From the NCBI GenBank assembly GCA_038496445.1, contig JALMLS010000086.1, forward strand, positions 1 through 64,000: 64,000 bases of DNA, in the 5' to 3' direction. Positions 20,802 through 47,577 of this stretch are shown piece by piece; positions within the stretch are counted from its first letter, which is position 1, and each line of letters opens with the position of its first letter. This DNA is from Trichosphaerium sp. ATCC 40318 (lineage: Eukaryota; Protista; Tubulinea). A model generated the notes under the pieces. That model was not told the origin of the DNA, did not search any database, and saw nothing but the letters and a program-made list of their open reading frames with translations. The translations under genes and the position numbers were made by a program.

Positions 20802-21469
20802 TCATTCTCTCTTTCCATAAAAAAAATGACAATGATCTTCTAATTTACCATTTTTTTTCCATTTTTTATACTCCCCATGCAACATATCATTGATTTGAGT
20901 ATAATGGAAATACAATTGACCATTATCATGCCAACATTTATACTCTCCTTCTATTCTATCACTGACAAACCCATATTTTACAAATAGCTGACCATTGCTG
21001 TACCACTCCTTGTGTTCCCCATTCTTTTCACCATCAGTGTAGTGTGATACTGCCTTTAATTGACCATTACGGTACCACTTGTATTCACCATTTAGTTTAT
21101 TGTTTGAGTAGTTACCTTGTTCATATAACTGGCCGTTATACCAACCCTCGTACACTCCTTCTTTGATACCATTCACAAAAACTTGACTTCTTATGCTTGT
21201 TTTGAAAGGATTTCCAAAATTTCTTTGTTGTAACCATTTACCATGTTTGTTAAGGTCATCATTGAATCGTGTTGTTGTAGCACTGTATTTTGATAACAGT
21301 GGCCACTTTAGATAAACTTCAAAGTCCAAATCGATGATATAATAATGTAGCTCAACTGGGATGTTTAATAAGCAAAGACGGCCTTCTGGAATGCTATTTA
21401 TCTTTTGTATTTTCGTTAACGAGGCGCGTGGTGTTAAAAATAAAATAATACCTTTCTTTTTGCTGTCAT
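20802..21469 (-). CDS. F-box-like + MORN-variant repeat protein, copy A
   Basis: Micro-exon MTAKRK (21469-21452), exon 2 21401-20802; LLNIPVELHYYII F-box-like; GEYKEWYSNGQL repeats; stop looks premature because a degenerate last repeat follows. Confidence 0.85.
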
Positions 21470-22095
21470 GATGTGTTGGGTTATATAAATGCACATTAAA
21501 TACTGCTTAATCTTCAAACAGCCTCGGTCAAGCAGATTCGCTAAAAACACGTGTTTTTGTAGCAAGCGTCGTTTCGCAGATTACTTAACAGGAACACATA
21601 GGCTTTTGTTTTAACTTATTGCCATGGGTGGTTAACTCAGTAGTGGTTGTAATTAGTTACATTCGTTGCTACCAACTTAGGCATCTTAAAAATTCTCGGA
21701 AATGCATCTCTCACGTGTGGTAGATATGCTATGAGAGGCGCGTTTTATAAACCAAACAAAAAGCGCGCAAATGATAAACGCTAACTCAACAATTTGGTGT
21801 CGGCCTGTGCCTTAAAATAAGCGATTGTCGTAAACATTCAACTTAACTATGTGTTCTGTAAAGGCTTTGTGGCATGTTTTCAGCTCAAAAAGAAGACATA
21901 CAAACGACGGCTAAGGCTTTCATTTGGTTGTTTTTGTTCTCCATTATACGCAGAATCAAGACCTGGTGGATATTAATGGTTGGGATATTTAGTCCTGATA
22001 CACAACATGGAAAAAGATTACAGGTACTGACACTACATGTGAAAACTAGAAAACCGACTCAAATCGAAACAAGGTTATTAAACTACAACAATTAC

Positions 22096-23226
22096 TTAAC
22101 GGGATAGCAGTTCAATTCTGGAAGCAGTCATATCTGGTGCAATCTATAAGAATAGTCACGTGATTTTGAAGATATAGCAAACAAGCAAGCCAAAATCATA
22201 CCTTGATACATGGAGAAAACCCAGGATAATAAATAGGTCGTGTAAATGGTTTAATGGAAGGTGCTATTGTATACTTCTCGGTTTCCTATCATCTCAAATC
22301 ATCAGTACAATAATAAACAAGTTAAGGCATTACCTGTTGACTTATCAATTGAAAATGTCTCCCCAGTAGCACGGCTTGTTGATATCAATGTTCTATCATT
22401 TAATTCAGCAAGTATATCATCTGCAAAAACCTGTGGTCTGCCAGAGCCAAGAGTATCAAGAGTTGATAAATCAATTTCACAAGGTCCTGGATCAGAACTC
22501 AGTAAAGATGTATCTAGTATATAAACGAAATCACTATCTGAGCCAATCGCAAGAGCTTCTAAGTATGCTATGTTGTTATCAACAACAACTAAAGTTTCCT
22601 ATCAGGATTCAACTATTGGGATATACGTACAGCTATCAATACCAAAGGTATTCTCAACAGGACAATTGGTAACAAGGGATACACAGTCATCTTTTTTTGT
22701 GATATCAAGCTTGTATTGCTGCAACCCGTTTGTACCAAAAAGTGTATAAAAGTGAGATCCATCAATGAAACCTCCTGAAACAATCGAGCCTGGAACAGAA
22801 CCAGTACAAATCTCAGTGTTATCTAATGCTCTAACTGATACGAATTCATTATATATAACAACAATCATCTCGCCATTTAATGAAGGTACTAATGAACACA
22901 TCAGGTTGTATAGGAAGCGAAAATTCAAAAACAATTAAATAGGCGTACTGGCAGCGAGGAGAAATATATCGATTGAAGTGGGAACACTGACACCAAATGA
23001 TCTCAGATCTACAAAATAACAATCTTAATTAATCACGTGGCAACAAACAAGATTTGTAATAAATAAAGCTGTACTGCAAAGCATACTGTTAAATTCAAGG
23101 TCTGTTGTTAATATCTCAACTTGTCTCGGAGGTGGCACTAGCGAATATGTACCCAGGAGGCCTCTGACAAACACAAACTGAAAAAACCGTTAAAATAAGG
23201 GCACACGAAAATATAGAGCTGTTCAT
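22096..23226 (-). pseudogene. Secreted protein family B copy, frameshifted in exon 1
   Basis: CQRPPGYIFA then a deletion shifting frame before PRQVEILTTDLEFN; VSVRALDNTEICTGS block and terminal IAPDMTASRIELLSR* present. Confidence 0.75.
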
Positions 23227-23964
23227 CAGGATCACTAATTTGAACAACACTTAAACTAAGTATCAATTCACAAACCTTAAGCATACATATTCTTTGACGT
23301 ATTTGTACTTGCGAGAGGTACACTAGAACATATATAAACAAAACGTAAGACGTAACATTCGGATAACTTCTCGGGGAATAACGTGGCCGAGAAAACAATG
23401 GCTGTACACGTGTTTTACTCCGTTACAGACGTTTGGGTAAACTTGAGTTGACTTCGTATAAATCAACAACAACAACAACCGACAAAGCTTAAACAACATG
23501 GCGAGCAGCAATCACCAACATCCCACCCAAAAATTTCCTTTTCAATTTGTTTTAAAAAACTGTAAAACCTTTCTTTTATTTCCAAGTGTTCTTGTATAAT
23601 ATAACAAATGCTTGGCGCTGCGCTAGAGCCACAAGACATTTTGTCTTCCTCCCAACATCGTCTTAGTTAGTGTTCCTTGGTTAGTTGATAGAAGAAAGTC
23701 AACTGAGAGTGTTAGAACTCTAAGTGCTATTGATGTGATCTCAACGTTCAAATAACTGACACAAATAATAAACTCGTATTGTCACGTGACTTTTAGTACA
23801 TTTGTTTCAATAGGTGGAAAGTCGACAAGAATCACATCTATTAACCCGTAAGGTGCTGGAGCACCTAATTAATGTATAGAGCCCTTAAGGGACAATAAAC
23901 TAGCACAAGCTCAGTACAGCTACTCTTCGTACCAAACGATATCAGTCAAGTTATGTGAGCGCAA

Positions 23965-24075
23965 TCAAAGGTAAGATTGAAGGGAGTACAAACAATGGTA
24001 TAAAAGTGGTCAGTTAAAACTACTTTGTCATTATGTTGATGATTTGAAAGAAGGAGAATATACTCAGTTTGATTT
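23965..24075 (+). pseudogene. Degenerate MORN-variant repeat fragment
   Basis: ...YKQWYKSGQLKLLCHYVDDLKEGEYTQ-like sequence, frameshifted. Confidence 0.65.
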
Positions 24076-24326
24076 CAAGGTCAAAAGGCGACATCGGTTC
24101 GTCATACCTTGCCACAGTCCATTCTGTTTTTAGTTGAACATGACTCACGTTTTCACCTGATGGAGGAGTACCATCTCTTAAAATACTTATACAAGTGAAA
24201 TACCGTACAAGAGTATCTAGGTTAGTATTCATAAACAAAGAAGTAGTCAAGTTGTCCAAAAAAAGTTATCTTATTTTACTATGTATTATATATACGTATC
24301 ATTTAGCTTACTTCCGTATGAAACGT

Positions 24327-25000
24327 TCACCACTCGTGATCAAAAGATATATTAATCTCATGAACATCTTTGAGTGCTTTGATTCCTTCAATAGTAAGTT
24401 TCCAACAACACTTTACGCTAATTGTGTGTACACCAACAAGACTTTTGATTCCTTCATCAGTAACTGCGGTGTAAGAAAGGTTAATAGTATGAACACCAGC
24501 AAGTGCTTTGATTCCAATATCTGTCACCCACGTTGAACGAAGATCAATAGTATGAACTCCTGCAAGTGCCTTCACACCTTCATCTGTAATGCAGTCACAC
24601 AATCTAAAACCAATTGTATGAACTCCAGCGAATTGTTTCACAATCTCGTCAGAAGGAAACTTGCTCCTTGTATTATTCACAAACTTGATTTTTGTGTTTC
24701 ATGATTCCACTGTGTTTAACAACTTGTTTTGCCTGTTCATCTGTTTTTACCCATATTCTATGGTATCCGACAATGTCGTGAATGATAGAACAAAGGATAC
24801 GACATGTTTGACAAGCTGCAAATCGATCTTTTGTTGTATGAGTTAATATCATTGCTAGAATCTCAACAGGTATGTCCAATAACGTTTTTTGAGCACTACA
24901 CTTAGTTTTAGAACGATACAATCAAAAAAGACGTTTACCTTGGATTCAATGTGTTGTACGCTATTTCAAGCAGTTTTTTATTGCCTGGTGTGCGGTTCAT
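24327..25000 (-). pseudogene. Frameshifted, shortened paralogue of the F-box-like/LRR gene at 43820
   Basis: N-terminus nearly identical to the 43820 gene; 2-nt loss in CACACAAAA near 24695; fewer LRR units; ends EINISFDHEW*. Confidence 0.85.
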
Positions 25001-25285
25001 TTCTGACTGTTTACTTAATACGTCACGTGAACATCATTTTGAAAACTATTGACTGGCTAACAAGTAAAAACGAAGTATCACTTGCCAAGCGAAAAATGTG
25101 TTAAATCAAATAAAAAGCAAAGACATGACATACCTTGATACAAAAGCAGGGTAAAAAACAGATTTGTGAATGGTCTAAACATAGATGCGACATTCAACAA
25201 AGCCAACAAGAAGTTGCTTCCAAGAAAAAAAGAAGAAAAAAAAAAGATGCCTGCTTAAAGTCAAAGTGAATACTAAAGCTAGACA

Positions 25286-26372
25286 ATGTTACGTGCAACA
25301 CCTTCTCGAGGCTATGACGCACCTCCAGTTGTTCGCTTGGACCCTATGGCACGTGTCTTTCTAATGGGTGTTTATGACGATAGTAATCACCTATCAGTAC
25401 TAAAAGGTCAATACCTACGCGAAACTAGCAAAATAAAGCGGTTTACAGCTCTTGTTTAAAAAAAACGACTCAAAACAAGTTTATTTCAGCTAAACGCTAC
25501 TCCTAGGCGTTGGCTATATTGTCATAAAGCGTATTTGGGAATATGTACTTGAATACAACAAAGAGCACTACGCTCCGTTCATTAAACAACAGCTCCCACG
25601 AAGAGGTATACTGGGTGGGGGTTACTTTGATGCACATTTCGCCATCATCGACAAGCTAAACTGTGAATCCTGGGATTCCATGCCAACTCAATTCGCTAAA
25701 GTCATTTCAAGCAAGTTTCCTTCACCTTCAGGAAAAGATATTGATATCAATATGATGCCTCTAAAGATGGACAAAAACCTCTTCAAGGATCAACTCCCTG
25801 AAGACCTGTGGCCTTATATATACTTACTAGATATCGTACTTACAGTGGACAGGGACCAAGAAGGTACAATATGCTTCTTAACAATACAAGAGTCTTTTGT
25901 TGAGAAAGGTAAAACACAACGAAGACCAGGTGTTCATATTGAGTATCCGGGTAAACTTGGGACATCACGTGGATATTACGATGAAGCTTGGGGTGGAGGA
26001 TATGCTTTAAAAGATGGTATGTTTATTGCTACAAATTTAGATGACACGTGCGCTATCTGGGACGTAAGCATTGAGGATAAAAAAGATGGAACATCAGTTA
26101 TTGGATCTTTGGGTGATTTGGAGCACTTGAAGAATGCCTTGCCAAGAGAGAGAATGTCGTTACTGAAAGGTAGGTCTATGTATTGGCTAACAGATAGAAC
26201 ACCGCATGAAGCGTTACCAATGAAAGAATCAGGAAGAAGAATATTCTTTCGCCTTGTTTCTAATAAGCTCGGCATGTGGTATGAATCTCACTCAACAAAG
26301 AATCCTATTGGTATTGTTCCTGATCCCAAGAAAACAAGAATCATCAAAGAGAACAAGTTTACAGATGCTTAA
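25286..26372 (+). CDS. Putative 2OG-Fe(II) dioxygenase-fold protein, copy 2 (inverted duplicate of 1363-2441)
   Basis: Same two-exon layout (intron about 25407-25506), open frame, catalytic part near-identical to copy 1. Confidence 0.7.
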
Positions 26373-27299
26373 ACTTGTAGAGTAGAATACTACAGGACTA
26401 GGGTGATAGATATCCGTGTAATAAAACAAATCAGGTTTCATATTGTCACACGTGATAAATAAATGGTTTTGACGTGAAAGCTGCTATTTGGTACAAGTGT
26501 TGATTTTTAATGATCCTTATAGTAATACAGTAGCATCAATTACCTTGGTTAGAATTTAGCAATAGCGCTGTATGTTAATTGTTTAAAAACAGTGCAAACT
26601 TGCATATAAACATGGATCAATGAGTTAAACAATGGAACAAAAGATGGCATATTGTAGTCATAGAATACAAAGAATGGGCAGCTAGTTTTAATGTACATTG
26701 TGTCAGACGTCATTGAGAAGTTGCCCAATAGAGAGTGCAATTGGAAGATGAGATGTCAAACTGCTTTCAGTTTCAAATGAATAAACTCATTGAGATTTCT
26801 TCATCATACTAGTGCATATACATTTGTAATTTTACATTATTTTCTTAATGATACTTCATTGTTCTTTGAATGTTAAAAAAGTAAAAATCAGTACTTCTTT
26901 GTTACGAAAGTACTTACTAAATTGAAGAGCCTCGCTGGTTACCATCCTACTACTAGAACACGCTGCATCGGATTTACCATTACAACCGATTAAATACCCG
27001 TAACTGAAGGGTAACAGCTCCAACGTCAGAAATAGGCTCCTGAACGGGTTGTCATAAAACCGAACCTATAAACCACTTATTTGTGTTAAGAATAAAAGGT
27101 AGCAGGGAACAGTGACAAAATCTGCTCGCAATATTCAAGACTGTTTCAGTTAGAAAACTGACATTAATGTAAAAAAAATTGTGGTTTGCAACACAAGCTT
27201 CTTAGAGCAATGACCCTGTACATCGATCAGCAATCGAACTCCATTCAAAAACAGAAATTTGCCTTACCAAGGGTAAGGGTAGTTAGGTACCCATTATAA

Positions 27300-27520
27300 G
27301 CACTAAAAAGGACAAGCTATGGAAGCTCAAGCAATAAAAACAATGCCTCAAATTTGCAACTGTGTTGCACACTTTTGAATATCCAAAGCCCACAGTATAA
27401 CTGAATAGAAAGTTGTAAAGAACATGCGTAAAGCACTATCTTTAAATAAAAAGATAGGCATACAGAGAATGATGCTAAATCGACTTGTAGTTTATTTTCA
27501 ATGAAGGGTTCAAACAAGAA
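27300..27520 (-). repeat. Inverted diverged copy of the stop codon/3' flank of the family A gene (about 7480-7690)
   Basis: ttcaatgaagggttcaaacaagaa and agctatggaagc...gcctcaaatttg are reverse complements of sequence at ~7480-7680. Confidence 0.75.
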
Positions 27521-27523
27521 TTG

Positions 27524-27656
27524 TACAGTGCTACAACAACACGATTCAATGATGACCTTAACAAACATGGTAAATGGTTGAAACGATTTAGCACTGATCG
27601 TTTTGGTGGGAATCAAGATATTTCCGATATCAGTAATAGTCAAGTTTTTGTGAATG
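27524..27656 (+). pseudogene. Orphan F-box/MORN gene segment: constant anchor + variable segment + constant anchor
   Basis: 57-nt YSATTTRFNDDLNKHGKWL anchor (56/57 identical to copy A), unique 57-nt insert, 19-nt SQVFVN anchor identical to copy A. Confidence 0.85.
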
Positions 27657-27981
27657 TCAAATATAAGCTTGAGGGAGTTTGCGTGTACAAGAAGAAACGG
27701 AATGAAACACTACGATACGGTACTAGAGTCTTAACGTTTGCCTCCTTATTCTTTGCTAGAGAGTATGGGTTAAAGCTGCAAAAGACGACCAGCTATATCA
27801 TTCAGGAGCGATTGGTACCATTGTTTGTGCTGAGAAAAATAAAGAGCTGTTCATGTCAAAATGTCACTTTTCTCTTGTTTCTTTTTAGGTAAAAGTTTGG
27901 TTTTGTATTGGGTATTAATAATAAAAGCACGTGACAAGAACCGTCAAAGAACTTCAACAAATTTTTATCCTGACGGCTCTT

Positions 27982-30117
27982 ATGCACTCTATAATCGTGC
28001 TCTTACTACTAGTTGGGTTTGTGGGCGCTCAAACCGGCAAAAAAACATCGTTTTTGTTTATTTTGGTGGATGACATGGGATGGTCTGACTTTGGATACCA
28101 TAATGGCTTCGTTAAGACACCAAACATCGATGCATTCGCTAACGGAGAGAACTCAATAAAGTTTTTAGGTTCGTAACGGTAAAAATCGAAAATACGCCGT
28201 TTAGGCTCACGTGTTTTCCCTTAATTCATTGCTAACTTTGTTTCATTTAGATTTTCATAGCGGTACGCTTTCCTCAATTGTTCCATGGTATTTTAGTTTG
28301 GGTTATCATGGCGCAAACGCTATGACCTCGTAGAGAGTAATACCAGGCCCCTTCAGGGTCTTTTTTTGAAATGGGAAATTTTTCCTTGTCATGTTCGTAT
28401 GACATTTCCTTGTAACTTACCCATACTCAAGGTGGTACAGTATGTTCCCCTACCCGCGCTACTGTACTTACAGGTAGAAATCATGTAAGAGATTGCGTAT
28501 ACAATGTTTACGGATGCACAGATCCTTCCTTGTGTAAAGTACTAACATGCTTCTGAAGATGAAAGTGTATTGTTTAATGCTCACCCTAGGCCAACATGCC
28601 ATTTGGTGGACCTGATCCAAAGGTTTTCACTGCAGCAGACGCAGTAAGAAAAGCTGACGCCTCTTACCGATCATCAATATTCGGGAAATGGCATTTGGGA
28701 GACTTCTTTGATAATCCCAGTGTTAAGTATCCTTCGTCACCAATCACACATGGTTTTGATCATTTCAACATGACAATTGAAGTAGCGCCTACTGCTACGA
28801 CGAATTGCAAATGTAAGAAGGAGTGGGAAGACACTTGTATGGTAGGACACTATGGCCCAAACTCACATTACAACACGTAAGACTCAACCAAGAAACCCTG
28901 TTCTTCTTTCTTACAGTTTTTTTGCTTGTAGCTTGCGAGACTGTTGTAATTACTGGTGGGAGAACTCCACTGCACCTGAAGGAGTTTTCAATGCTAGTAT
29001 CCCAGTAGGTAAGAACGATGCAGAGTTTCTTGTAGACTCGTTTGAATCGTTCTTAACTGAAAGGAATGGAGATCCGTTCTTGAGTATGATTTGGTTTCAC
29101 AATAATCACATTCCTTACATAGCATGTATGCCTCTCTCTTTATCCTTCTTATCTCACACCTTGTAGTGAATAAAACTCGCCAAGACTGCGCTGACGGAAA
29201 GACTTGTCCTAAAGGCGATTATTCCAGTGCTCAACTGGATTACTACGGTGCAGAAGTAGAACTAGATGAACAGATTGGAAGAATTAGGAAGTTACTTAAA
29301 ACACAAGGATATGCTGATAACACAATGATCTGGTTCACAAGCGATAATGGCCCAGAAGGAAATTGTGATAATGGGATATGTGACGCTGCCCATTACCAAA
29401 CTTGGCCAGGTTCAGCCAAAGGATTACGTGGAAGAAAACGAGACACATGGGAAGGAGGACATAGAGGTAAATGTTGTTTGTTTTTTGGTTTGCAAGAATC
29501 CTTTGGAGTTGACACTTTTCTTTAGTTGCTGGTATCATAGAGTGGCCGGAGATGATTAAAAAAAACAGAGTTGTTCCAAATACTCCTGTAAGTTACTTCC
29601 ACCTCGAAATCATTCTGTTTGTTTTTAACTCTAGTTAGGTTAATACTGTTGATTTCTTACCTACAGTGATGGATATTCTTAACGTAGAAAGACCAGAAGA
29701 TCAAAAGGATTGGGCTATGGACGGCACCAGTATAATGCCACTAATAAGAGGAGAAGAGTTCCCAGGTAATTAAAAAAAAACCAACACGTGTTTGATTGTT
29801 TACAACTGACATAACCTGTAGATCGTGGCATGGGATGGTGGTGGCACGGACGTGTTGGGTTAGGATGGCGCTACGGAAAGTGGAAGCTTGTTAATGATTC
29901 AAAATCATGTCTGAAAGAAGCTTGCGAACCTGCTTTGTATGATTTAGATGCTGACTTGCAAGAGACAACTGATCTTTCTTTAAAATATCCTGTCATTTTT
30001 GAACAAATGAAAGCAAACTTGACAGAGTGGGTACAATCTTTATACCACTCAACAAAAGTTGAATCAAAGTGTCCTACCGCACCAAACCTATATCCACCAA
30101 TGCCAGATGTTTTTTAA
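27982..30117 (+). CDS. Secreted arylsulfatase (formylglycine-dependent sulfatase family)
   Basis: FILVDDMGWSDFG, CSPTR (CxPxR) motif, GKWHLG, TSDNGP, LRGRKRDTWEGGHR, LYDLDADLQE; includes a 12-nt micro-exon at 28251-28262. Confidence 0.93.
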
Positions 30118-30170
30118 ATGAATAAAGACGCATAGAAGCATTTCAGAAAAAACTTGTTTTTTGATTCAAT

Positions 30171-30258
30171 TCAAGAAGGAGAATATACTCAGTGGGATCA
30201 CAATGGTAAAATAGTGAAACAATGTTACTATGTCAAAAACAATTCGCAGCAACAATAA
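30171..30258 (+). pseudogene. 3'-terminal MORN-variant fragment
   Basis: QEGEYTQWDHNGKIVKQCYYVKNNSQQQ*, matching the C-terminus of the 46701 gene. Confidence 0.75.
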
Positions 30259-30775
30259 ACAAATACCAAGCCACAGTCTGTTTGTTTAAGATTATGGCAA
30301 TATCATGCTCTCTCTTGATGGAGGCTTGATATTATTAAACAGCGGATTCAAGAGTTGGATGTGACTTTTTACTTTATAGCTCTAATGCACTTGTTGCTTT
30401 GATATCTCCAATTGCCCTTTTGTCTCAATTCTCTTTTCTATTTCTGTATTTGAACATTCTGTGAAAAGCATGATTTATCCAGAATTGCGCTCAGCAATTT
30501 TAGTGTAGTGAGACAATGTATAGTGTAACATCAGGAGTGGTTAAGTTGCTACACAACAAAGAGACTACAGAAATAATTGATACAATGGAGGCACGTGCCC
30601 ATAAAAACTGTTGTCCTAACCATTGTTGAATTCTTCATATTTAATTGCGTTTGTACCTGGACATTTAGTGAGGTTCTTTCATAGTAATCCATGGGCAACT
30701 TTAACAAACGATAACATAAATAAAATATTTGAGAATTAAAATCCATTTTTATTCCTTTTTTTTTTTCTCTGTTTC

Positions 30776-33700
30776 TCAGAATCCTTTTGGTTTACCAAAC
30801 CCAGCAGGGTTAGTACCAAGCTTATTACCAAATCCTGTATTTGTACCACCAAAGCCTGTATTTGTACCACCAAATCCAGTATTAGTAGTACCACCAAACC
30901 CTTTATTGTTGTTTCCAAAGCCAGTGTTTGTACCTCCAAGACCACCAAACCCTGTGTTTGTTGTTGTACCTCCGATACCACCAAACCCTGTATTTGTTGT
31001 AGTGCCTCCAAGACCTCCAAAGCCTGTATTTGTACCACCAAATCCAGTATTAGTAGTGCCACCAAACCCTTTAATGTTGTTTCCAAAGCCAGTGTTTGTG
31101 CCACCAAGGCCACCAAAACCCTTATTAGTACCACCAAGACCACCAAACCCTGTGTTTGTTGTACCACCAAGACCACCAAAACCTTTATTGGTACCAAGAT
31201 TACCAAATCCTGTGTTACCAAAGCCAGTGTTCGTTCCACCAAGATTTCCGAAACCAGTAGATGTTGTTGTGTTTAATGGTTTTAGGATTGCTCCCCAAGC
31301 GTTTTTTTGCTAATATTATTGTAAGTAATCAATAATTTAAAAACATTTAACGAAACAAAGAGCCTCAACGAAGAGAAGAACAAAACAAATCTGAAAATCT
31401 CATTTTTTTCCAGTTTTCGCAAAAAAAAAAAAAAGTGTCTACGTTTACTGTTGAAACACGTGATGATAACTTATTGATAAGTTATACACATAATGTTCAT
31501 ACAAGCGTATACATAATGTGAAAGTAAAATATTGTAAAGATCAAGAAGGGTTTCGTATGGGGTTTTTTTTGTTGGACTTACTGCTAGTGCCATTTGAGTT
31601 TGTGCATTGAGTTCTTTAGGTATGTTAATAAAATGAGTAAAAGGACTAGGACCACGAATATTATCATCAGCAATAAGAGCAGGGTTGATATTCTCGGCAA
31701 CAACAGCAGAAAGGTTAACAGCAGGATTACGGAAATCAATAAGATGAAGAAAACCCTAAACGAAAAAAAAAATCAACTACAAGTAAGAAAAAAAAAAAGA
31801 ATTAACTCCAGGTCATCACAGACGAAGAAAAAAAATAATAACCCATACACTCAAAGTAGATATAGGATTGTTTGAGAGGATGCCGTATCTGGATGTGATG
31901 TGCTGGAATGATATTCAAGCGGAAGAAAGAAAAGAAAAATGAAGAAAATGTAGTACGCACATCCATGTTATTCTGGACTTTGTAGACGAACAATACAAGA
32001 GCCTGGAATAGATTATTCCTACCAAATGGAACTTGCCATATAGCATCACCAAGTATAATATTAAAATGAGGTGGATGTATATGAGTTTGATATATAGCAA
32101 GCCTGTGATCTGTATTTTTGTTTGTTGGATAAAGTGTTTCTTTTGATGGATTTGGATAAATAAAATGATTTTTTGAGAAACTATCGTTATCATCGGTAGC
32201 ATTAGGATTTGTTTCGAGTAGACTGTTCATATACTCTTCAAAAACATGCATTACAATCTATATTGATAGAGTTTATTAACAAAGACAGAACAAAAGAAAA
32301 GTAATTTCAAAAACATTTCAACAAAAAAACAAAACATACCTGCGCGTCTGTTGGAAGCTCTGGTGTCCATGGTTTACCGCCTACAGTTCCACCTCTATTC
32401 CAATTAAAACAAGCCATGCATGTGCCTTGGCTCAAATCTACTACGCATTAACACATAAAGGAACTTCAGAAAATGAGTTTGCAAAAATGCACACTTCGTA
32501 CCTTTGATTCTCTGTGCAACATATTCGTGTGACGTAGCACCAAGTACATTAAGACACTCTGATATTAAATGTGCCATCTTTGGCATAGTTTGTTCAAGTT
32601 TTTGATTTGGATTGGTATTGGCGTTAAGCTAAACAAGGCCATTAACAACACAGACAATGATAAAAGAAAGGTTGCTTTGTGTTTAATCTGTACCTGAGCT
32701 CTCGAAGGCCATAAGTTATTTGTGAGAGTACTGTTTCGGCTCTCCAATGATGTTGGAGGTAGTGGCCTCAATGATTGACTAATAACATGCATAGGTGCTT
32801 TGAAGTGTAATTCGATAGCAGACATCCATAATGTTAGAGGTTTAAGTATCATTTTGGCTATCCACTAGTCAAACATATCAATAACAACGAAAAGAGAATA
32901 CACAAAAAAGTAAAGGCTTTTAGAGCATTTATCGAGTTACCTCCAATACCACAAAAAATGGTACAATAAAGGAGTGGTATAGTTTAAAAAACTGTAAAAA
33001 AAAAAAGATAATGTATTCTTAGTTTTCGTTTTCTGCTCTTGGTACGTACCAACCGCATTCTTCCTTGCCATACTGGTAAAAATTCTGTTATTCTATCAGA
33101 CGCAAAGAGCTCTTCAAATTTCTACAAAAAGAAATCAACAAATAAGGCAGTCAAAGCTGATATCCTTACAGCATTATCGTCATCTTTTTCTTTTTTTTCT
33201 GGCTCAGGTTCCGGAACTACAGACCTTGGTCTTGGACTAGCAAGTTTCTTTGGTGTCGGTGAGTAAGTTACCGTATTTGGTAGGTTTGTATTAGCAACAG
33301 GTAATGCATCTAAGCAAGAGAGTAAGTAATCCGCAGCAGGAACAATAAGATATCTTTTGAAGAAAAAGTTAAAAAACGTACAAGGTGTCATCTTCTTTTG
33401 ATACCCTGCATTTTGATTAAACCGTGCTGGTGTTCTATTATTATATCCACCAGGCGTTGTAGTATTAAATCTACCACCACTTGTTGTAGATATAACCCTA
33501 GGCGCAAATGGAGATTGCTCTGGACGCCTTTGTAGGGGTGTGCCATATGTTGATGTATTCGAGATACTTCCTTGAGTTTGCTGATAACTACATCAAAAAA
33601 AATAAGTGTTAGCCCTGCGTTTGTAAGATATCGACGAGTGACGCCTAATTAACATATTGTACACCACGGCGAAAAAGAAGAAATACAGCCGAGGGAGAGT

Positions 33701-34752: not shown

Positions 34753-35064
34753 ACAAGCGACTCTTTAACGACGTTTCTTCAATGATTGGCAGAAAAAAAA
34801 GTAAACGGCTTTCGCGCCCGAAGGAAAAGCCATAAAGAAACAACGTTCGTACGACAATCGTCTTGCTGTAAGTCAACTACGCAGGCGTTTTTGTATACAA
34901 ACAACAATAATTTTACTTAGTTAGCCTCGTAAGGCTTTTTTTTACAGGTGGCTTTTGTTTTAAATAGGGTTTGACAATAGATAAGTGCCCCACGTATGTA
35001 GAATTTTGTTTTTGTTGGGTGAGAATGTGTGAGAGTGGGTATTGGAAAGTTGTGGATGCAATTT

Positions 35065-37187: not shown

Positions 37188-37478
37188 GCGGTCTATGACG
37201 AAGCTGTATCAGTAGTTATACAAGAATTCGCTACGAAAGTGGTCCAACAAGAGCAAGAACTTCAAGCAACTCGAGGGTTAAAACGAGACCTTGATGCGCT
37301 ACAAGGCGAAAATGCGAAGTTGCTGAGAGAAAACAAGAAGCTGCGGACAGCAATCGCTAAAATGAACGAAGAAGCACAAATCGTTGCCAAGAGCGCTCAT
37401 GCTATTACAACCCTTGCATCTATAAACGACACACTTGCCGAAGAAGATGACGACGAAGTCTTGCTGCTCAAGAGATGA
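37188..37478 (+). CDS. Small coiled-coil protein, last exon (5' end unresolved)
   Basis: Acceptor ttttag, heptad LKRDLDALQGENAKLLRENKKLRTAI. Confidence 0.4.
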   Translation, partial: AVYDEAVSVVIQEFATKVVQQEQELQATRGLKRDLDALQGENAKLLRENKKLRTAIAKMNEEAQIVAKSAHAITTLASINDTLAEEDDDEVLLLKR

Positions 37479-37845
37479 AACAAACTGTTATAACAAAGAA
37501 TCATCACTTCGAGCCAGTTTGTTGACTCCAGTAGCGAGGTGCCTTCCGTTGTGGCACAAATCGAGAAAACCGCGACGTGCGAGTTGGAATGGAAATGAAA
37601 TGTATTGCCAAGTGTCATATTTCGTGGTCTGTCAGGTTTACAACACACTGTTATAAAGCGCCATACAAGGCGTCCTAAATAAACTAATGAAAATGTGTTG
37701 CAATAATTGTTTGCAGACTCAACAAAGACTTGTCACTCGTTGGCTTGGCTATTACTGTGGCGTATCTGTGACAGTACAGGCATCGCCAATATTCTTCGCT
37801 TAAAGGTTTAAGTCCCCAATTTTACATTATTGAAGCCCAGCGGTA

Positions 37846-38949
37846 ATGATTATACGCAACACCCTCGCTAGAGCGTCACAACGGCAAACGCGTGTTGCTA
37901 GCACAAAGCGCTCGCGAGTTAGAACAAAACGAGTTGCAAATACCAGAGCGTCGGTAGTTTTAGTGTCTAAGCGCAATTACGCAACACACAACGAAGTTAT
38001 CAAAAATGCTTTGGATTACATGCATGAAACGAACATGGGAGTCGATATTGGCCAAGACGTAGACACAGAGTACGAGTCAGAACACGGTGACGAGACACCA
38101 ATCCCTGGTCTTGTAGAAAGCACTAAAGTTCATACTGATGGCAAGCGCATATATTCTAGACAAGAAGTACGTTATTATCTCTGTTAATTGTTATCTTTTT
38201 GATTATTATCGTTTAATTATCCTACAGGTTGGAAAACACAGTACAGCAAGCGACTGTTGGTTTATAATTCGCGCTAAAGTATACAATATCACAGAGTGGC
38301 TTAATTTTGCTCCATGCAGAGGTGCCCCAACCCGCCTATTAGAAGTACGCCTGTTTTAAACATAAAAACCAAAACGCTCAAGCTTTTAAAAGTCGTCTTG
38401 TGCCAATTGGCTCTACACTCGCTTTAAAACGCTCTAACAAAAGTCAGTTTGCTGGAAGAGACGCTACTATGGCATTTGATAGTAACGAACACTCTTGGAG
38501 GGCTGTAACTATGCTTGAAGATTTTCACATTGGGTGAGGATTTTTACCTTTTTTTTTTTTTTTCGTACAATAGCACTTCGCGCACTCATATGAGAACAAC
38601 TCGCTTACTTTTATGGTTAGCTGGTGTTTTGAAAAACCACGTTACACTATCATTAACGGACCAACATATGCAACCAATGAGAGAAGATATGCTTATGGTG
38701 TTGCGTCAGACCGTTGGAATCTCGACTTTGCAGATGAACAATTCAAACTGTACGTACAGCGTCTCTTTTTTTTTTACTCTGCTGTTCTTTGTGGACTTAT
38801 TTGTTAATCTAGGAGTGAGACACCAAGCGACCAGGATACGTATGATCCAAAAGGAAGCATACGTGATGTACCAGACAAGTCAAAATACCCTCAACAACCA
38901 AAAGAACCTTCAACTGAAGAAACAACAAAAAAAGACTAAAAACCATTAA
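37846..38949 (+). CDS. Probable mitochondrial protein with an atypical cytochrome b5-like domain
   Basis: Arg/Ser-rich presequence; YSRQEVGKHSTASDCWFIIRAKVYNITEWL...AGRDATMAF..EHS...LEDFHIG; 3' end approximate. Confidence 0.78.
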
Positions 38950-39452
38950 AAAAAAAAAATAACCAAACTGCTCTTGCTGGAACAAAAGCGGCTTGGCGCA
39001 ACTTTTTGTTGCGCGTTTGTATACCTTATACAAAGTACAAAGGAATCCATGTATGTACGGCGGGTCTCTATTTGGGCCTACCCACAAAATCATCATTTAC
39101 TTGACATACAAATACCATTCAAAGCGATTTTACGCAAACTAACTGTGTTTTTGTTGAACGTGGGTTGGTATTGGGATCTCTACATTTTTTGTAGAGTGAA
39201 GGAAAAACCAGTGGACTACGAGGTTTCGCTTGTTCCTTTGAAGGTATAGTGTTTGGCGTATTAGTTGGTCGATCAGTATTGACTTTTTGTTTTTTTTTTG
39301 AATTTTGTCCTATTTGTAGCTGAACAAACGTGTAGCCTCAAAACCTATTTTGGTTGTCTTTGGTAGCGCTTACGATCAAAACTAAACGTTCCAAATACGC
39401 ATGGGTTGATATTATTTAAAATACTATCGTTTAGAAACAATCAATATACAAA

Positions 39453-42400
39453 ATGAAATCAACCAGCGATGATAAAACGGGAAGAGCTATGTCTGTACAT
39501 AAAAAACCTGCACCATTACCCAGACCATCACGAAGTTATACCGTAGCAGCTGGATCGCCAACACGTAGATCCCCTGCGTATTCTACTTCGGGCCCACGTC
39601 CTAATGTCAAAAAGGTAAACGATTTTGCTTTAGCCTACTAAAATATATGTAACCACGCCATTGAGATGCGAAAGAACTGATTCTCAAAATAAGAGACGCG
39701 TACACTTTCTAACTTTGCTCCAAAGGAGCCAATAATTGTTTACTTTGGTGATAAGACAAGCACAAGGATAGAGATATACGCTACACACTCTGCAAGCGCA
39801 ATGAAAGTAATTATTTTTAAAGCAAAAAAAATGCCGTTTGGTGATATTGAAAAGTTCGGTTTGTACTCAGAGATAGTCTCAAATCTACAACGTAAAGGTA
39901 CTGATCTATTAAAAGTATAATTGCGAATCCGTAATATCATTCTAACAGCACAATGTGCTGTTTTATCTTCGCTATTGCCACTTTTCTTTATTTTTGGCTT
40001 TGAAGCCTTTTTTGGAACTTGACGATTTCAAAGATACAAATACGTATACATCATTGTAAACTAATTTATTTTTAGTATCAGAGGTTGCATCAGACTCTAA
40101 GCCTTTCGATTTGTATAAGAAGTACCTCAACAGCACAAAAAGCCAACTTCGATTTTTCCTTTTAGAAAAATCTAAATTCAAGGACTTTAAGCTTAACAAA
40201 TGTACGTAACAGCAAGTTGTTCCGATTATTTTATGCACACGTGCCACTATTTTTATCAAAACTATTTTTACTTTATGCTTCGAATTACATTAAAGGCGCT
40301 AGTGCGTAACACGTGCGCTACAAAATTTGGTCTTTTTTTTTTTGGCTGCCACTACAACCGTTTAAATGTTTGCGTGTGACTTCCTTCGTGTCACAGTATT
40401 CGTGAATTTTTATTGTATTTTTTTATGGATATTACTTTATACTCGTGTTGTGGTTGTTAGTTTAATAATGATTGTTTTATTAGTTGGTAAAGGCTTGAAG
40501 AAATTAAAAAAAGCAAAGAAGGGTAAAACAATGAGAAAACTAAGAGGAATATCGAAAGTAGATAGAAGTGAAAGCAGTAGATTAAGTCCTAAAAAGAAAC
40601 CAGAAACTCGTAGAAGGGTAAGGAAGAACATTGTATTTCTCTTCTTTTCTTTTTTTTTCCATGCTAGTAGCTTCATTGAACAAGTTGTTTTAACTATTTC
40701 TCACGTTTATTTTTTTGTATTTTACTCTTGTTTTCTAACTTATTTTTAGTCAAATACAACCGGATCTCTAGGTATGCGAGAGTCTTGTCCTTCCACAGCA
40801 GAACGTGTGTCAAGCCCTGCACATGTTACTAAAGATAATGAGGTTAGTTGTCTTTATTCTATTACTTGACTTCTTATTTATACACAGGCACGTGGAGATA
40901 CACCTACAAAGAATCGTCCAGGTAGTCCTACACCTGCAAGAAAGACTGCACGTGGTACGTAGTATTGATTAACTCCAGTGAAAAATATTTCTTGAGAATT
41001 CTGTTTATGCATTTGTTTGGAGATAGACTTCGTGACTCTTTCGGTTATTAACCATAATATTAGACTCTGGAATAATGGATTCTTCTAAATTATATGTTTC
41101 TTCTATTTGTGGTAATTGCAGTATTATTATTCAAGACACTCAAAGTACGAGGACTTTGTCGAATGACTGCCTAACTTTCTTTTTTTCTCCCATTTTTTTC
41201 TGACAACTCATGTTTTATCTCTAGACAAAGAACGTGTTGTTGGTGCTGCTAAAGCAATAGCAAATGAAACACAAAAACTTATAGCTTGCGCAAAACATGT
41301 ATCAGTGTTGTTACTTGACTTCCCGTTACGCCAAAAACAACTACTAGCACATGGACGTGGTATAGCATTAACAACATCAAAACTTGCAATGAAATCACAA
41401 CGTGCTACCACTGATTCTGATTTTCATGCACTTGTGTCTCTTGCTAAAGTATTGTCTAATCACTGTGAGGAGATACTTGTAGTTATACTTTCAGCAAACA
41501 CGTACGTCACACTAAACATCAGAAGCAAAAACGGAAAAAACACTTCTTTACAATCTAAAATTCTTAAGTTTTCACTCTTTAGTTAAACGACTTTTAAACA
41601 CTTGAGTATCTAATTAAGGAAATTGAATACAGCGTTTGCTATTAATCATAGTATTTTATCTCTAGACAATAGCGTAGTTTGACACTTTCTCCATCTTTGT
41701 ATTTTTTGACTTGTTTTTAACATTTTTTTGTTTTTAGTCCACCTGTTCCAGCTATAAGTGTCGAAGTTGAATTAGTAGAAGCGCCTATAATAAAGCGGAA
41801 ATCTATGGCTACTGACCCAATAAGATCAAGAGCTCATACAACTGCTGGTACGTATTGCTGCTATTAAGAAAAAAATAAGAAAAAAGAATCCTAACACATT
41901 TCTACCAGCAAAATCATCTCTGAAGTCTATCTCGAAGAGTAACTCTTTTGAACAAAGAAGTAAACATTCTATTGAATCAAGTTGTAAATCACATGATTCT
42001 GAAACGAAATCATCAATAGAAACACTTGAAGATAGTTGTGATGACGTAGATAAACTTCTCGCTCAATTCGAGACAGAAATAGAACATACAAAGAAACTTG
42101 GAATACAAGTACCTTCACCTGATAATGATCAAGGAAATAATATCCATGGAAAGGACTCAGAACATGCTTACCTATCTACTGATGAAGTTGATGGTATATA
42201 CGCTATGATAACAGAACTTGAGACGCTTACAGACACTGATGCAACAACACTTGAAACGCCGAATAGTGACGACTTTGGTGAAGTTAAGAGTGAACCTATT
42301 TCTCCTCCTCCGAACACTCAGAAATCGATTTCTGTCTCTGCCAAGACAAAAGTAGAGGTAGCAGATAAAGACTTTGCTAGTGAAGCTGAAGCTCTTGAGA

Positions 42401-42975
42401 AGTTGATGGACCCTAATGCATCTAACTCTGCACGTCTTTCTGTTCTTATGAACGCTGGTACGTTTACTTTTTTCTCGCCTTGGTTTTTTTTTTCTCTTGC
42501 TCGAAAGTAACAACTCGTGAGACTCTCAGTTTTTGTTGAAATCTTTCAAATATCGTGTGACTTCTTTCTGATATACTACACCAACAATAATATGAGAAAC
42601 AATTTCATTTTCTTGTTGAGGGGGTGTTGTATGAGGTGAAGGACGAATGTGGTTCCTCGTTTTGATTTTTTTTTTTTTTTGTGTTTGTGATTTTGTGAAA
42701 ACTCCAACGGAGGTAAAACTGCAATTTATACCTTACAACTGTCATACACATCAAATACCTTTTTTTTTTTTTGGTTGTAGTTCTTCACGAACCTTTTTTG
42801 TTTTTGCTTTTCTTTCTTACACAGTTTGCCAGTTGAACAAGATTTGCAACGAGAGACAGAAAAAACACAAGCTTTATTTGGTCCTGTTGATGAACAAGCT
42901 GAAATGGATGAGAATGATGCTATTCTTGCTCAATTTGATGCGCTCAAAATTGAAGAAATTGATCTTGACTTTTAG
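39453..42975 (+). CDS. Multi-exon low-complexity protein with a vinculin/alpha-catenin tail-like helical bundle
   Basis: KERVVGAAKAIANETQKLIACAKHVS...KQLLAHGRGIALTTSKL resembles vinculin-tail helices; S/P/K-rich flanks; ends IDLDF*; exon structure partly inferred. Confidence 0.55.
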
Positions 42976-43819
42976 AGAAAAAAACCCAAAAAAAACAGCT
43001 TGAAAATAAAAGAAAAAAATGTAGTATAAATTGTGTATGTTGACAGTATTGTCCGAAAGGGTCGCCACAGACAAAAGTAACTTGTATACCACGAGGAAAG
43101 CGTCATGCAAATCGCTCTCAACAGAGTTGACACCCCTTGGAAAACATGCACAGGTCTGTTTGTTACGAGTGTGGCGTAAATGGGACAAATAACGTTCCGC
43201 ACCACAGTTTGATAAATCTGACTGAACAAAAAAATCTTTCAAAAAAGACATGTGCAATGAGACCGTAGGGCGTTGTACTACAATTTTGAAACAAAAATGA
43301 AACGGATAAAGGCTGTTGCTGGGTTTCCGTTTTGAGAAAAGTAAAAAAAAACAAACTGAAGCGTTACCTTGACGTGGCTTGACAATAGTACCCTCAACAA
43401 AGGCTATCTTTGTTTATTCAGCATCCCAGGTGAACTAACAGGATCTATAACATTTATAAATTCTACTTTTTAACAACAAGTATTGCCAATGAATGGGTGA
43501 GAAAATAGCGGTTCTCCTTAAACAACCTGCAAACAATATATTGTAAGTACTACATTGTTACTAGTTGCGTGCAACAAAAGCGACAGTGAGTTGTAAACGG
43601 CCACCCGGAAAAATATGAAAGAAATAAAAAAGTACATTCATCTTGTACTGCATCACGCAGTTTACTTTTTGAAACTGAACAAACGTACTTCATTAAATAT
43701 AAACCTGTAGTGGTGCTGTATGTAGTTATGAGCCAATTATTTAGGTTTCAAAAAACTGGCACCACGTGTTAGGTGAGTCAATAGTTTTCAGAGTATCACG
43801 TGAAAATTACATAGTCGCA

Positions 43820-44919
43820 ATGGATCGCACACCAGGCAATAAAAAACTGCTTGAAATAGCGTACAACACATTGAATCCAAGGCAAACGTCTTTTTTGATT
43901 ATATCGTTCTAAAACTAAGTTGTAGTGCTCAAAAAACGTTATTGGACATGCCTGTTGAGATTCTAGCAATGATATTAACTCATACAACAAAAGATCGATT
44001 TGCAGCTTGTCAAACATGTCGTATCCTTTGTTCTATCATTCACGACATTATCGGATACCATAGAATATGGGTAAAAACAGATGAACAAGCAAAACAAGTT
44101 GTTAAACACAGTGGAATCATGAAACACACAAAAATCAAGTTTGTGAATAATACAAGGAGCAAGTTTCCTTCTGACGAGATTGTGAAACAATTCGCTGGAG
44201 TTCATACAATTGGTTTTAGATTGTGTAACTGCATTACAGATGAAGGTGTGAAGGCACTTGCAGGAGTTCATACAATTAACCTTTGTGCAAGTTATGTAGG
44301 AGATGAAGGAGTTAAAGCACTTGCTGGAGTTCATACTATTGGCCTCGAGTATCTTTATGTAACAGATGAAGGAGTCAAAGCACTTGTTGGAGTTCATACT
44401 ATTGATCTCAAGTCTACTTGTGTGACAGATGAAGGTGTAAAGGCACTTGCGGGAGTTCATACGATTAAACTGGATGACACCGTAGTTACAGATGAAGGAA
44501 TCAAAAGTCTTGTTGGTGTACACACAATTAGCCTAATCAATTGTGTAAATATTACAGTTGAAGGCATCAAAGCACTCAAAGATGTTCATGAGATTGCAAT
44601 TTCTCCCCCAACAGACTTGTGGCTCAAACCACTTGGCAATGTACACTCAGTAACCATTTTAGGGGGAGAAAATATAACAGATGATGGAATCAAATCATTA
44701 ACCAAAGTCAGCCACCTTAGTATTTTTTTTTGCCCCAATATAACAGACTTGGGTTTTAAGACATTGGTAAACCTTGAACAACTACATCTGCAATGCAACA
44801 ACAAGATTACAGATGGTTGCTTGGAGTACTTAAAATCTCTAAAACGTGTTGTATCTGGGGGTACATTACTAACAAAGGAGGCTGTTGAGTCGATGGGTAT
44901 TCAATATACTACATGGTAA
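43820..44919 (+). CDS. F-box-like + short LRR protein (351 aa), GC-AG intron 43882-43925
   Basis: LLDMPVEILAMIL...CQTCRIL F-box-like; ALAGVHTIxL repeats; spliced frame is open; paralogue has GT at the same donor. Confidence 0.87.
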
Positions 44920-45540
44920 TAATTATATCGTGTTTTACATCTTGTAATCAAACCTTGTTGTATCTGCTGTGTATTTTACAATAAAGCTATATTTATACAG
45001 TTTGGAATCTTAAAATCGATAATGTCCACATGTAGCAGAAGGTGTAGTATTCATTGATTATTTCTTTTGAGTTGTTCATCTGATTGTCGTGAGCAGTAGT
45101 ATAAGAGATGTTACACATGTATATTAGTCTCACACCCGTTCATACCGTGAACGACACTACAACAAGCGCTTACGGAACGAGCTTGGCCAAGGATAAGACA
45201 TACGGTCACAAAATGGCAGTTGTAGGTGGGTAGTGAATCGTGTACTGTTTCTAGTTAGTACTCAATGTAAATATCTCTGAGCTTACAATCACTCAAAGCT
45301 TTAATAGGCCCAAGCGAGTTATCTTTTGAATTGGTGTATGTCATATTGAATATCAAAGATAAACGTGCTTTTTGATTTTATTATTCTAAATACTTTGTTG
45401 TTGAACTCCATTGACGTAGTAGTGTTCCATTATTTGGCAATTTCTATCATTCAGAGTACTCTCCTTCTCTTACCACCAGCATAACAATAATGGTCAACTG
45501 ACCATTTTATAATACTTTCGCTTGTACTTGACTTCTTTTA

Positions 45541-46225
45541 TTACATCAGAGAAGTAGAGCAGTTCTTGATGAGTGATAACTGACCATTATGATCCCACTC
45601 CTTCTGCTCTCCTTCTAGTTCACCATTGTTGTATTTATATGACTTCCACAATTGACCATTTTGGTGCCACCACTTGTACTCTCCTTCTCGGTTACCATTA
45701 ATGTAGTTCACTGTTGAATGCAATAGACCATTTGAGTACCAGTTCTTGTATTGTCCTTCTAAATTATTATTGACATAATGGTAATGTGCCCTTAGTTCAC
45801 CATTGGTGTACCACTCCTTGTATTCACCATGTAGTTTATTGTTTGAATAGTGTCCTTTTTCATGTAACTGGCCGTTATTGTACCAACTCTTGTACACTCC
45901 TTCCTTGTTACCATTCACAAAAACGTGACTTATTTTGCTTTTGCTGGTTGGAAAGCGAAAGGCCAAATTATATTGTTTCAACCAGTTGCCATGTTTGTTA
46001 AGCTCGTCATTGAATCGTGTTGTTGTAGCACTGTATTTTGATAACAGTGGCCACTTTTGATAAACTTCAAAGTCTAAATCGATGATATAATAATGTAGTT
46101 CGACTGGGATGCTTAATAAACAAAGATAGCCTTCGTTGATGGGTACTATCTATTGTAAAATGTATTTTCGTTAATTTGAGTGTGGTAGTTTAAAGTGAGC
46201 ACGCTACCTTGCGTTTGGTAGTCAT
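45541..46225 (-). CDS. F-box-like + MORN-variant repeat protein, copy B
   Basis: Micro-exon MTTKRK (46225-46208), exon 2 46149-45541 in frame; LLSIPVELHYYII; MORN-variant repeats. Confidence 0.87.
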
Positions 46226-46700
46226 GTGGAAGTTAGGTACACGTGCACAGTTTAATCGGTCAAGTAGTTTCAAAAAAAAATTAGTAGTTGATTCGTGCTG
46301 CTTTGAGTTCTTGTTACTGTTTAACAGAGTCACGCTGATAATGCAACCATAAACACATGTTTTATCGACCACATTAATACTCTAACAAGCACGTGAACAT
46401 AAACTACATAGATTGGTGATTAATTTATCTTTTAAAGTACCTAATCTTTTGCAAGCTGTCATTTTTATCAAAACACGTTTTAAAAAAAGAAAATAACATT
46501 ATTACTAAAATAAGCTATGTCCACTCAAACGTGTTTTGGTTTATTAATACAGTATTATTTAGATGAATTGTGAATAAAATAGATTATGGTCAGCATTAAC
46601 TTGTTGCTAGCTGTTTGACTTAGCTTTTTTTTTCTGTTGTTGGAACCAGAACTTACATTCCTCCTAGTTGAAAGCATACTGAAATGATGTTGCCTTACTG

Positions 46701-47577
46701 TTACTGCTTCTTGTTTTTGACGTAGTAGCAGTGTTTCATAACTATGCCATTGCTATTCCACGAGGTATATTCTCCTTCTTTCTTGTCATCAACGTAATGG
46801 CAATGTTCTGCTAATTGACCATTTTTGTGCCACTCTTTGTACTCTCCTTCTTGAAGCCCATTAACATAATGACATTGACGAACCAGAATGCCTATTTCAT
46901 GCCAAAGTTTACAATCTCCTTCTAGTTTGCCTGAATTGTAATTACACCATACAGCTATTTGACCGTTGTCACGCCAGCATTTGTATTCACCATGTATTTT
47001 ATTGTTTGAGTAGTTTTGTTGTTTATGTAACTGGCCGTTAGCATGCCAACTCTTGCCCTCTCCTTCTTTCTTACCATTTACATAGTGATATTGTTTTTTT
47101 ATTAGACCATTGGTGTACCACTCCTTGTATTCACCATGTATTTTATTGTTTGAATAGTGTCCTTTTTCGTGTAACTGGCCGTTATTGTACCAACTCTTGT
47201 ACTCTCCTTCTTTGTTACCATTCACAAAAACGTGACTTGTTTTATTTACGCTTTTGTTGAAAGAGAATCTAATGCTGCCATCAAGCCCTACTTCGCATGT
47301 TTTGCTGATTAGATAGCTAAAGGTCAAACCATTTGGTTTCAACCATTTCCCATGTTTGTTAAGGTCATCATTGAATCGTGTTGTTGTAGCACTGTATTTT
47401 GATAACAGTGGCCACTTTTGATAAACTTCAAAGTCTAAATCGATGATATAGTAATGTAGCTCAACTGGGATGCTTAATAAACAAATATGGTCTTCTTTGA
47501 AGAGTATCGTCTAGTAATTTTATTAATTTGGTACAGGGTTTTTAAAGCAAGCACGTTACCTTGCGTTTGGTAGTCAT
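46701..47577 (-). CDS. F-box-like + MORN-variant repeat protein, copy C
   Basis: Micro-exon MTTKRK (47577-47560), intron 47559-47511, exon 2 47510-46701 in frame. Confidence 0.87.

Follow-up and report, generated by a model that had tools for sequence, protein, structure and literature searches.

Three paralogous genes and one gene fragment in a 64,000-nt stretch of the genome of Trichosphaerium sp. ATCC 40318 (contig JALMLS010000086.1, positions 1–64,000 of the forward strand; hereafter, the window) carry a variable segment, denoted V, that lies between an F-box-like domain and an array of MORN_2 repeats and measures 42, 48, 102 and 57 nt in copies A, B and C and in the orphan piece, respectively. 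We conclude, with a probability of about 0.7, that V is a loosely constrained linker that is kept in frame and drifts approximately neutrally between the constrained modules of fast-turnover paralogues, without any programmed diversity generator. The original prediction, made from the DNA alone, took V for a hypervariable part of a diversifying substrate-recognition repertoire; the defence role suggested for this repertoire is speculative. V looks extreme only beside the F-box-like core and the first two MORN repeats.

With a GC content of ~0.37, the window is AT-rich, and it contains few long open reading frames (ORFs). The coordinates, lengths and translations of the three copies, the fragment and their four variable segments all agree with those originally proposed. 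The gene models are as follows:

46701-47577, minus strand: copy C, the sole fully intact copy
47560-47577, minus strand: exon 1 of copy C, ATGACTACCAAACGCAAG, encoding MTTKRK; kept in A, B and C, with GTA next
47511-47559, minus strand: intron 1 of copy C, 49 nt, GTAACG...TAG, phase 0
46701-47510, minus strand: exon 2 of copy C, 269 codons and stop
47238-47339, minus strand: V of copy C, 102 nt, 34 aa
45541-46225, minus strand: copy B, a paralogue of copies A and C
46208-46225, minus strand: exon 1 of copy B, encoding MTTKRK
46150-46207, minus strand: intron 1 of copy B, 58 nt, GTAGCG...TAG
45541-46149, minus strand: exon 2 of copy B, 202 codons and stop, truncated after ~5 repeats
45931-45978, minus strand: V of copy B, 48 nt, 16 aa
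20802-21469, minus strand: copy A, a paralogue of copies B and C
21452-21469, minus strand: exon 1 of copy A, encoding MTAKRK
21402-21451, minus strand: intron 1 of copy A, 50 nt, GTATTA...AAG
20802-21401, minus strand: exon 2 of copy A, 199 codons and stop
21189-21230, minus strand: V of copy A, 42 nt, 14 aa
27524-27656, plus strand: orphan gene piece, consisting of a 57-nt 5′ anchor, a 57-nt V (27581-27637) and a 19-nt 3′ anchor

The long ORFs of copies B and C contain no in-frame ATG and are preceded by an in-frame TAG; in copy C, the TAG ahead of exon 2 is also the 3′ splice site. Upstream of the long ORF, all three copies share the sequence ATGAC(T/A)(A/G)C(C/A)AAA(C/A)G(C/A)AAG, followed by GTA, and the 49–58 nt after this shared start end in AG exactly at the codon boundary that opens the long ORF. 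Each gene consists of an 18-nt exon 1 (MTTKRK; MTAKRK in A), a short phase-0 GT-AG intron and one long exon 2. The mRNA-like contig of a relative (L002; 992 nt, ORF 130–771) has the same MTTKRK start, lacks the GTA and reads straight on. Given the exon 1 and intron signals in all copies and the absence of the GTA from L002, A, B and C are eukaryotic, spliced genes. Exon 2 of copy C encodes a 10-codon lead, the F-box-like domain, V and ~8 MORN_2 repeats, in this order, whereas the orphan piece has neither the F-box start nor the MORN array.

For copies A, B and C, the only Pfam match is MORN_2 (PF07661; E = 1e-9, 8e-19 and 1.8e-24, respectively). The repeats are tandem, β-hairpin-forming units of ~23 aa with the pattern G-x3-G-x4-W...NG. 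The N-terminal part (57 residues), used as the query of an exhaustive profile search, yielded 48 cluster representatives that share one architecture, in which an N-terminal domain with the consensus LLxLPxELQxxIxxxDxEVYxxWPLLxKxTAxTTRFxxxLxKHGxW is followed by a spacer and MORN_2 repeats. The P and E of the L-P-x-E motif are at least 90% conserved in a 49-sequence alignment (A4; consensus LLxLPxELQxxIxxxDxEVYxxWPLLxK). The most conserved motif of the family, WPLLSKYSATTTRF..L.KHGKW, ends the F-box-like domain, whose distinctive conserved tail reads WPLLSKxTATTTRF..L.KHGKW.

The Pfam F-box (PF00646) and F-box-like (PF12937) models were matched by none of 45 family members, even at E <= 1; a word-index search with the N-terminal 75 residues gave no match; and a profile search of PDB sequences returned no F-box match, only chance matches to brazzein. 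When aligned with the window's own F-box-leucine-rich repeat (F-box-LRR) protein using hhalign, the LPxE stretch alone was aligned, with a probability of 5%. A profile of the domain built from a 5-sequence alignment found no confirmed relative among IMG/VR viral contigs or among metagenome contigs, and the window's own proteins were not found in the searched protein collection.

The fold of the domain was assessed by structure modeling. The AlphaFold2 model of copy C, obtained with the family alignment as input, has a mean pLDDT of 85.8 and comprises three short helices followed by a hairpin array. The helices span residues 16–25, 27–35 and 38–44 (pLDDT ~90), and Foldseek matched the repeat part of the model to MORN1 crystal structures with E = 1e-8. 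For the N-terminal domain, the single Foldseek match in the PDB is Cdc4, in its Skp1 complex, and all nine matches in AFDB Swiss-Prot are Arabidopsis F-box proteins aligned at their F-box. VIA-align, which is independent of Foldseek, likewise retrieved F-box proteins as its top 9 and most of its 27 matches, the majority of them solved with Skp1. The individual scores are weak (Z <= 3.5, E ~5) because the domain has just 48 aa. We accept the N-terminal domain as a predicted divergent F-box-like three-helix fold that is missed by Pfam and recovered by structure comparison, in agreement with the F-box/MORN identity proposed at the outset. A function of this domain in binding Skp1 within SCF (Skp1–cullin–F-box) complexes would be in keeping with such a fold.

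V stands out in the same model by its low confidence. Successive 10-residue blocks of V have pLDDT values of 54, 76 and 68, against at least 90 in the flanks, and V is the least confident region of the model, setting aside a dip at about residues 201–220 within the repeat array. In 47 scorable relatives, HGxW and the first clear MORN motif lie ~5 to 50 aa apart (median 18), with one outlier that stems from the crude motif. The position of V is thus a length-variable spacer across the whole family. Several distant members already show MORN-strand-like residues behind HGKW, and V is probably what is left, in degenerate form, of a first hairpin.

To place the divergence of V on a scale, we used the neutral yardsticks that the genes themselves provide, namely intron 1, the first 30 nt of exon 2 (the 10-codon lead) and synonymous sites. 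V can be aligned above shuffled controls in the A–B and B–C pairs (z = 3.9–4.7), in accord with the weak alignability originally noted for B and C; the A–C pair and the pairs of each copy with the orphan piece are not alignable above such controls. Between A and B, an aligned identity of 0.69 in V compares with 0.81 in intron 1, with 0.72 in the lead of exon 2 and with a synonymous divergence (dS) of 0.25–0.31 in the flanks; between B and C, the corresponding values are 0.81, 0.89, 0.70 and 0.09–0.20. On this comparison, V drifts at about the neutral rate. The label 'hypervariable' thus holds relative to the two conserved blocks that enclose V but not relative to intron 1, the exon 2 lead or the flank dS, which V matches.

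The enclosing blocks are under constraint. The ratio of nonsynonymous to synonymous divergence (dN/dS) is 0.09–0.15 in the F-box-like core and 0.36–0.56 in the first two MORN repeats. Copies share 93–96% identity over the 141 nt upstream of V and 86–95% over the ~135 nt downstream, so the description of near-identical anchors stands, with the qualification that the anchor on the 3′ side is short. Beginning at about the 46th codon downstream of V, identity is down to 50–70% and dS is saturated (>1.4), so that V is one of several diverged stretches rather than the sole one; the dN/dS of the distal MORN repeats is unreliable, given this saturation and an uncertain repeat register. Divergence along the genes is uneven, as had been anticipated. 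Within V, dN/dS is 0.59 (A–B), 1.5 (A–C, poorly aligned) and ~7 (B–C), with 12–23 substitutions per pair; these values are not significant and, with V evolving at about the rate of the intron and synonymous sites, they do not bear out its proposed role as a diversifying recognition element.

We propose the following explanation for this pattern. Copies A, B and C are paralogues in a lineage-expanded eukaryotic family of small proteins, in which V joins the F-box-like module to the MORN_2 β-hairpin array. Selection would hold V translated and in frame because the downstream MORN array must be read, while the sequence and length of V would be under little constraint, so that substitutions and in-frame indels accrue at an approximately neutral rate. 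Purifying selection keeps the F-box-like core (dN/dS ~0.1) and the first two MORN repeats (0.4–0.5), which may, in addition, be homogenized by ectopic recombination or gene conversion among paralogues. The alternation of free and constrained stretches would produce the 'anchor - variable - anchor' appearance, and the family would turn over by duplication, gain and loss of repeats, truncation and decay.

This explanation requires that V be translated. All four V lengths are multiples of 3, as originally observed, and no segment contains an in-frame stop; intron 1 measures 50, 58 and 49 nt in A, B and C. For shuffled V segments, the probability of containing no stop is 0.29, 0.31, 0.07 and 0.19, and the joint chance that four non-coding copies would be both stop-free and a multiple of 3 in length is ~4.5e-5. 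The V of copy C has four stops in each of the other frames and none in the coding frame. The linker is retained in two transcript-derived relatives, P0002 (MMETSP) and P0107 (MMETSP0405, Trichosphaerium sp. ATCC 40318), and in four JGI proteins (P0003, P0101, P0110 and P0138) from single-ORF contigs ~1 kb long that belong to one sample; two of these contigs look like isoforms of a single gene. In a public run of unknown kind (X1; Logan contigs), the sole run with this DNA, a B-like contig crosses V without a gap, which is compatible with retention of V but is not proof of it. V could instead be a short spliceosomal intron or an alternatively spliced 'exitron' (TG/GT...AG/TC; 48, 54, 108 and 63 nt including the boundaries), given that GT and AG occur at matching positions in all four copies and that the length is within the range of intron 1 (49–58 nt). 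However, the conserved Trp-Leu and Ser codons account for the GT and AG. The only GT at the 5′ edge of V falls within the Trp codon of HGKW, a residue that is invariant in alignment A2 and mostly W, with some F, in the wider family, and splicing would destroy it; moreover, a 5′ splice site here would read GTTGAA or GTTACA, in contrast to the GTA of intron 1. With V in frame and stop-free in 4/4 copies, and the linker present in mRNA-derived relatives, we regard an intron as very improbable. We conclude that V is very probably translated and disfavor the intron because the Trp is conserved, the frame is constrained and the mRNA-derived relatives keep the linker.

Several observations weigh against a neutrally drifting linker. 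The comparison is limited to three genes and one fragment, and retention of V in the organism's own mRNA is inferred, not seen. Between the V segments of B and C, 9/9 cleanly aligned substitutions fall at codon positions 1–2 and all change the amino acid; the chance of this bias is (2/3)^9, or ~0.026 uncorrected, which hints at selection for change. Finally, the anchors of the orphan piece are identical to those of A at 75/75 nt, yet the V segments of the two align no better than chance. Simple drift from A cannot explain this combination, which needs either descent from another paralogue with anchors conserved at the DNA level or conversion or recombination within the anchors. The codon bias is part of the case for V as a specificity-determining loop under diversifying (positive) selection in a family that would serve as an adaptively evolving repertoire of SCF substrate receptors. 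The B–C difference of 11.5 nonsynonymous versus 0.5 synonymous changes and the tolerance of in-frame indels speak for it, as does the positive selection in substrate-binding parts that a passage in PMC8120010, citing Thomas 2006, reports for other F-box families. Nevertheless, the rate of V does not exceed the neutral yardsticks, omega is 0.59 for A–B, and the counts are too small, with a P of ~0.06 in a binomial estimate that combines V with the lead region. V is also of low confidence in the model and ranges from nearly absent to long among relatives, known cases place the selected sites in the binding domain and not in an F-box-proximal linker, and two of the three genes are decaying. Diversifying selection on V is an unlikely explanation. 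We give a slightly smaller chance to a broader scenario in which V, together with the 10 codons that open exon 2 and vary just as freely, would be a selected determinant of specificity or geometry: indels and substitutions would tune the presentation of the MORN array on the SCF scaffold, recombination in the DNA-identical anchors would reassort linkers and arrays, and the family would form an amoebal innate-recognition repertoire shaped by conflict with giant viruses.

The orphan piece also bears on exchange between copies. If the anchors were substrates for recombination or gene conversion, V and the MORN arrays would be reshuffled among paralogues, the genes would be mosaics and the orphans would be by-products or donors. 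Besides the identical anchors beside an unrelated V, this idea finds support in the contrast between a dS of 0.1–0.3 in the 5′ half and >1.4 in the 3′ repeats, and in a partial paralogue at 9.3 kb that is A-like over its first 131 nt (89%, including a one-codon deletion of A) and C-like over its full 362 nt (88%). The X1 contig is also suggestive: it differs from B at 9 positions in all, the six listed lie at 46007–46089 and none is listed in V or in the MORN part. By these listed differences, it agrees fully with B along the MORN part and V and departs from it within the F-box region. However, the apparent mosaic may be a switch between paralogues by a k-mer assembler in a conserved stretch, and the high 3′ dS may stem from misaligned repeat units; in addition, only 3–4 sequences are compared, and there is a single orphan cassette with ragged ends and no donor array. 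As the leading cause of the pattern, exchange within the anchors seems doubtful, although it is compatible with a neutrally drifting linker, does not exclude it and, from the sequences compared, would be a plausible addition to it. Programmed or targeted mutagenesis of V, whether template-directed as in diversity-generating retroelements or by cassette conversion as in antigenic variation, can appeal to the anchor-variable-anchor layout and to the single orphan cassette at 27.5 kb, and to nothing more. No second copy of any V that could serve as a template or donor is present in the 64-kb window, and no biased mutation spectrum is apparent, as the B–C changes in V are mixed and not adenine-specific (reverse transcriptase was not searched for). 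With V evolving at the rate of the intron, and the B-like contig of another sample (X1) showing no listed difference in V, we consider programmed change extremely improbable.

A linker that drifts freely between two constrained modules is expected to look, in young paralogues, much as V does, and the case suggests a useful yardstick: an apparently hypervariable stretch should be tested against the gene's own intron and synonymous sites before diversification is invoked. The corrected gene model (18-nt exon 1, short intron and one long exon) and the finding that amoebal MORN_2 proteins bear a divergent F-box, missed by Pfam and with a distinctive conserved tail, are useful in their own right. 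The size of the family in Trichosphaerium and its link to giant-virus F-box/MORN genes were already known (PMC10521059): Tekle et al. (2023) reported F-box and MORN as the commonest domains among the giant-virus-like genes of Trichosphaerium sp., in a genome whose GC content is 37.69% and whose introns average 75 nt (PMC10521059). The GC content of the window, its short introns and the family all match these values.

F-box proteins with MORN or MORN_2 repeats from giant viruses (Nucleocytoviricota) and Trichosphaerium have the same two-module architecture as A, B and C. An Atlas feature search with residues 1–100 of copy C found nearest clusters that carry MORN_2 and F-box domains, mostly from Nucleocytoviricota, which we treat as a lead only. 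In contrast to giant-virus genes, those in the window have a spliceosomal intron and sit in gene-sparse, debris-rich DNA, on which grounds we assign them to the host; their N-terminal domain is not recognized by Pfam F-box models. Expanded F-box families are also known from nematodes and plants (FBA, FTH and LRR types); their members likewise combine a conserved N-terminal F-box with a fast-evolving C-terminal interaction domain, duplicate in tandem and include numerous pseudogenes (PMC8120010). Positive selection in these families was demonstrated on large sets of genes and is located in the binding domain, whereas here the variable part is an inter-domain linker. MORN1, junctophilins, radial-spoke proteins and bacterial YwqK-type MORN_2 proteins share the repeat fold, but none of the canonical MORN or YwqK-type proteins has an F-box-like head. 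Sequence relatives of the repeats alone are mostly prokaryote-type metagenome proteins with 30–49% identity.

Decaying and fragmentary members of the family are scattered over the window:

45400-45540, minus strand: decayed MORN-like repeats past the stop codon of B, out of frame and with stops
44938-45050, minus strand: remnant of an F-box-like domain, frameshifted and interrupted by stops, placed in tandem downstream of B
9301-9973, plus strand: partial paralogue with MORN repeats (9301-9659, 88% to C) followed by the 3′ flank of C (9688-9973, 87%)
43385-43437, plus strand: fragment of the exon 2 start, 53 nt, 91% to B
23979-24063 and 30174-30259, plus strand: two 86-nt family fragments, 78–80% to A and C over their last MORN repeat and stop region

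Copy A has a stop codon within its last MORN repeat (GKRE*EYAQW), that is, a late nonsense codon, and two single-codon deletions in the MORN repeats. Given the truncation of B, the nonsense codon of A, the pseudo-fragment at 44938–45050 and the scattered debris, the family pattern fits birth-and-death evolution. In copy C, a recent internal duplication of two repeats (46956–47246, minus strand; ~122 nt, 82% identical to the adjoining unit) indicates that the array grows by unit duplication.

The partial paralogue at 9.3 kb begins with a short fold-back (9287–9314, plus strand) formed by CTCCTTCTTTG, a 3-nt spacer and CAAAGAAGGAG, which suggests a hairpin or fold-back repair at a breakpoint. 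The orphan piece at 27.5 kb meets unrelated repeat DNA at a sharp junction (27523/27524). The DNA just upstream of it (27298–27523, plus strand) is another dispersed repeat that is also present at 7477–7690 on the minus strand (69% over 245 nt). The possibility that the 27.5-kb and 9.3-kb pieces are halves of one broken gene was considered and dropped, as their ends overlap by a few bases and the 27.5-kb piece seemingly continues in degenerate form.

Near copies B and C, the ORF at 43942–44919 encodes the F-box-LRR protein, with a Pfam F-box-like match (E = 3.6e-5), LRR_6 and internal LRR duplications. This gene region (43776–44595, plus strand) has an 89%-identical inverted partial paralogue at 24354–25054 (minus strand). 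A repeat pair at 43457–43580 (plus strand) and 56682–56807 (minus strand), 127 nt long and 85% identical, is unrelated to the F-box/MORN genes. Elsewhere in the window, positions 10843–12180 (plus strand) contain an uninterrupted 445-aa ORF with RNI-type leucine-rich repeats (LRR_6, E = 7e-34), which is unusually long for this intron-rich, ORF-poor window.

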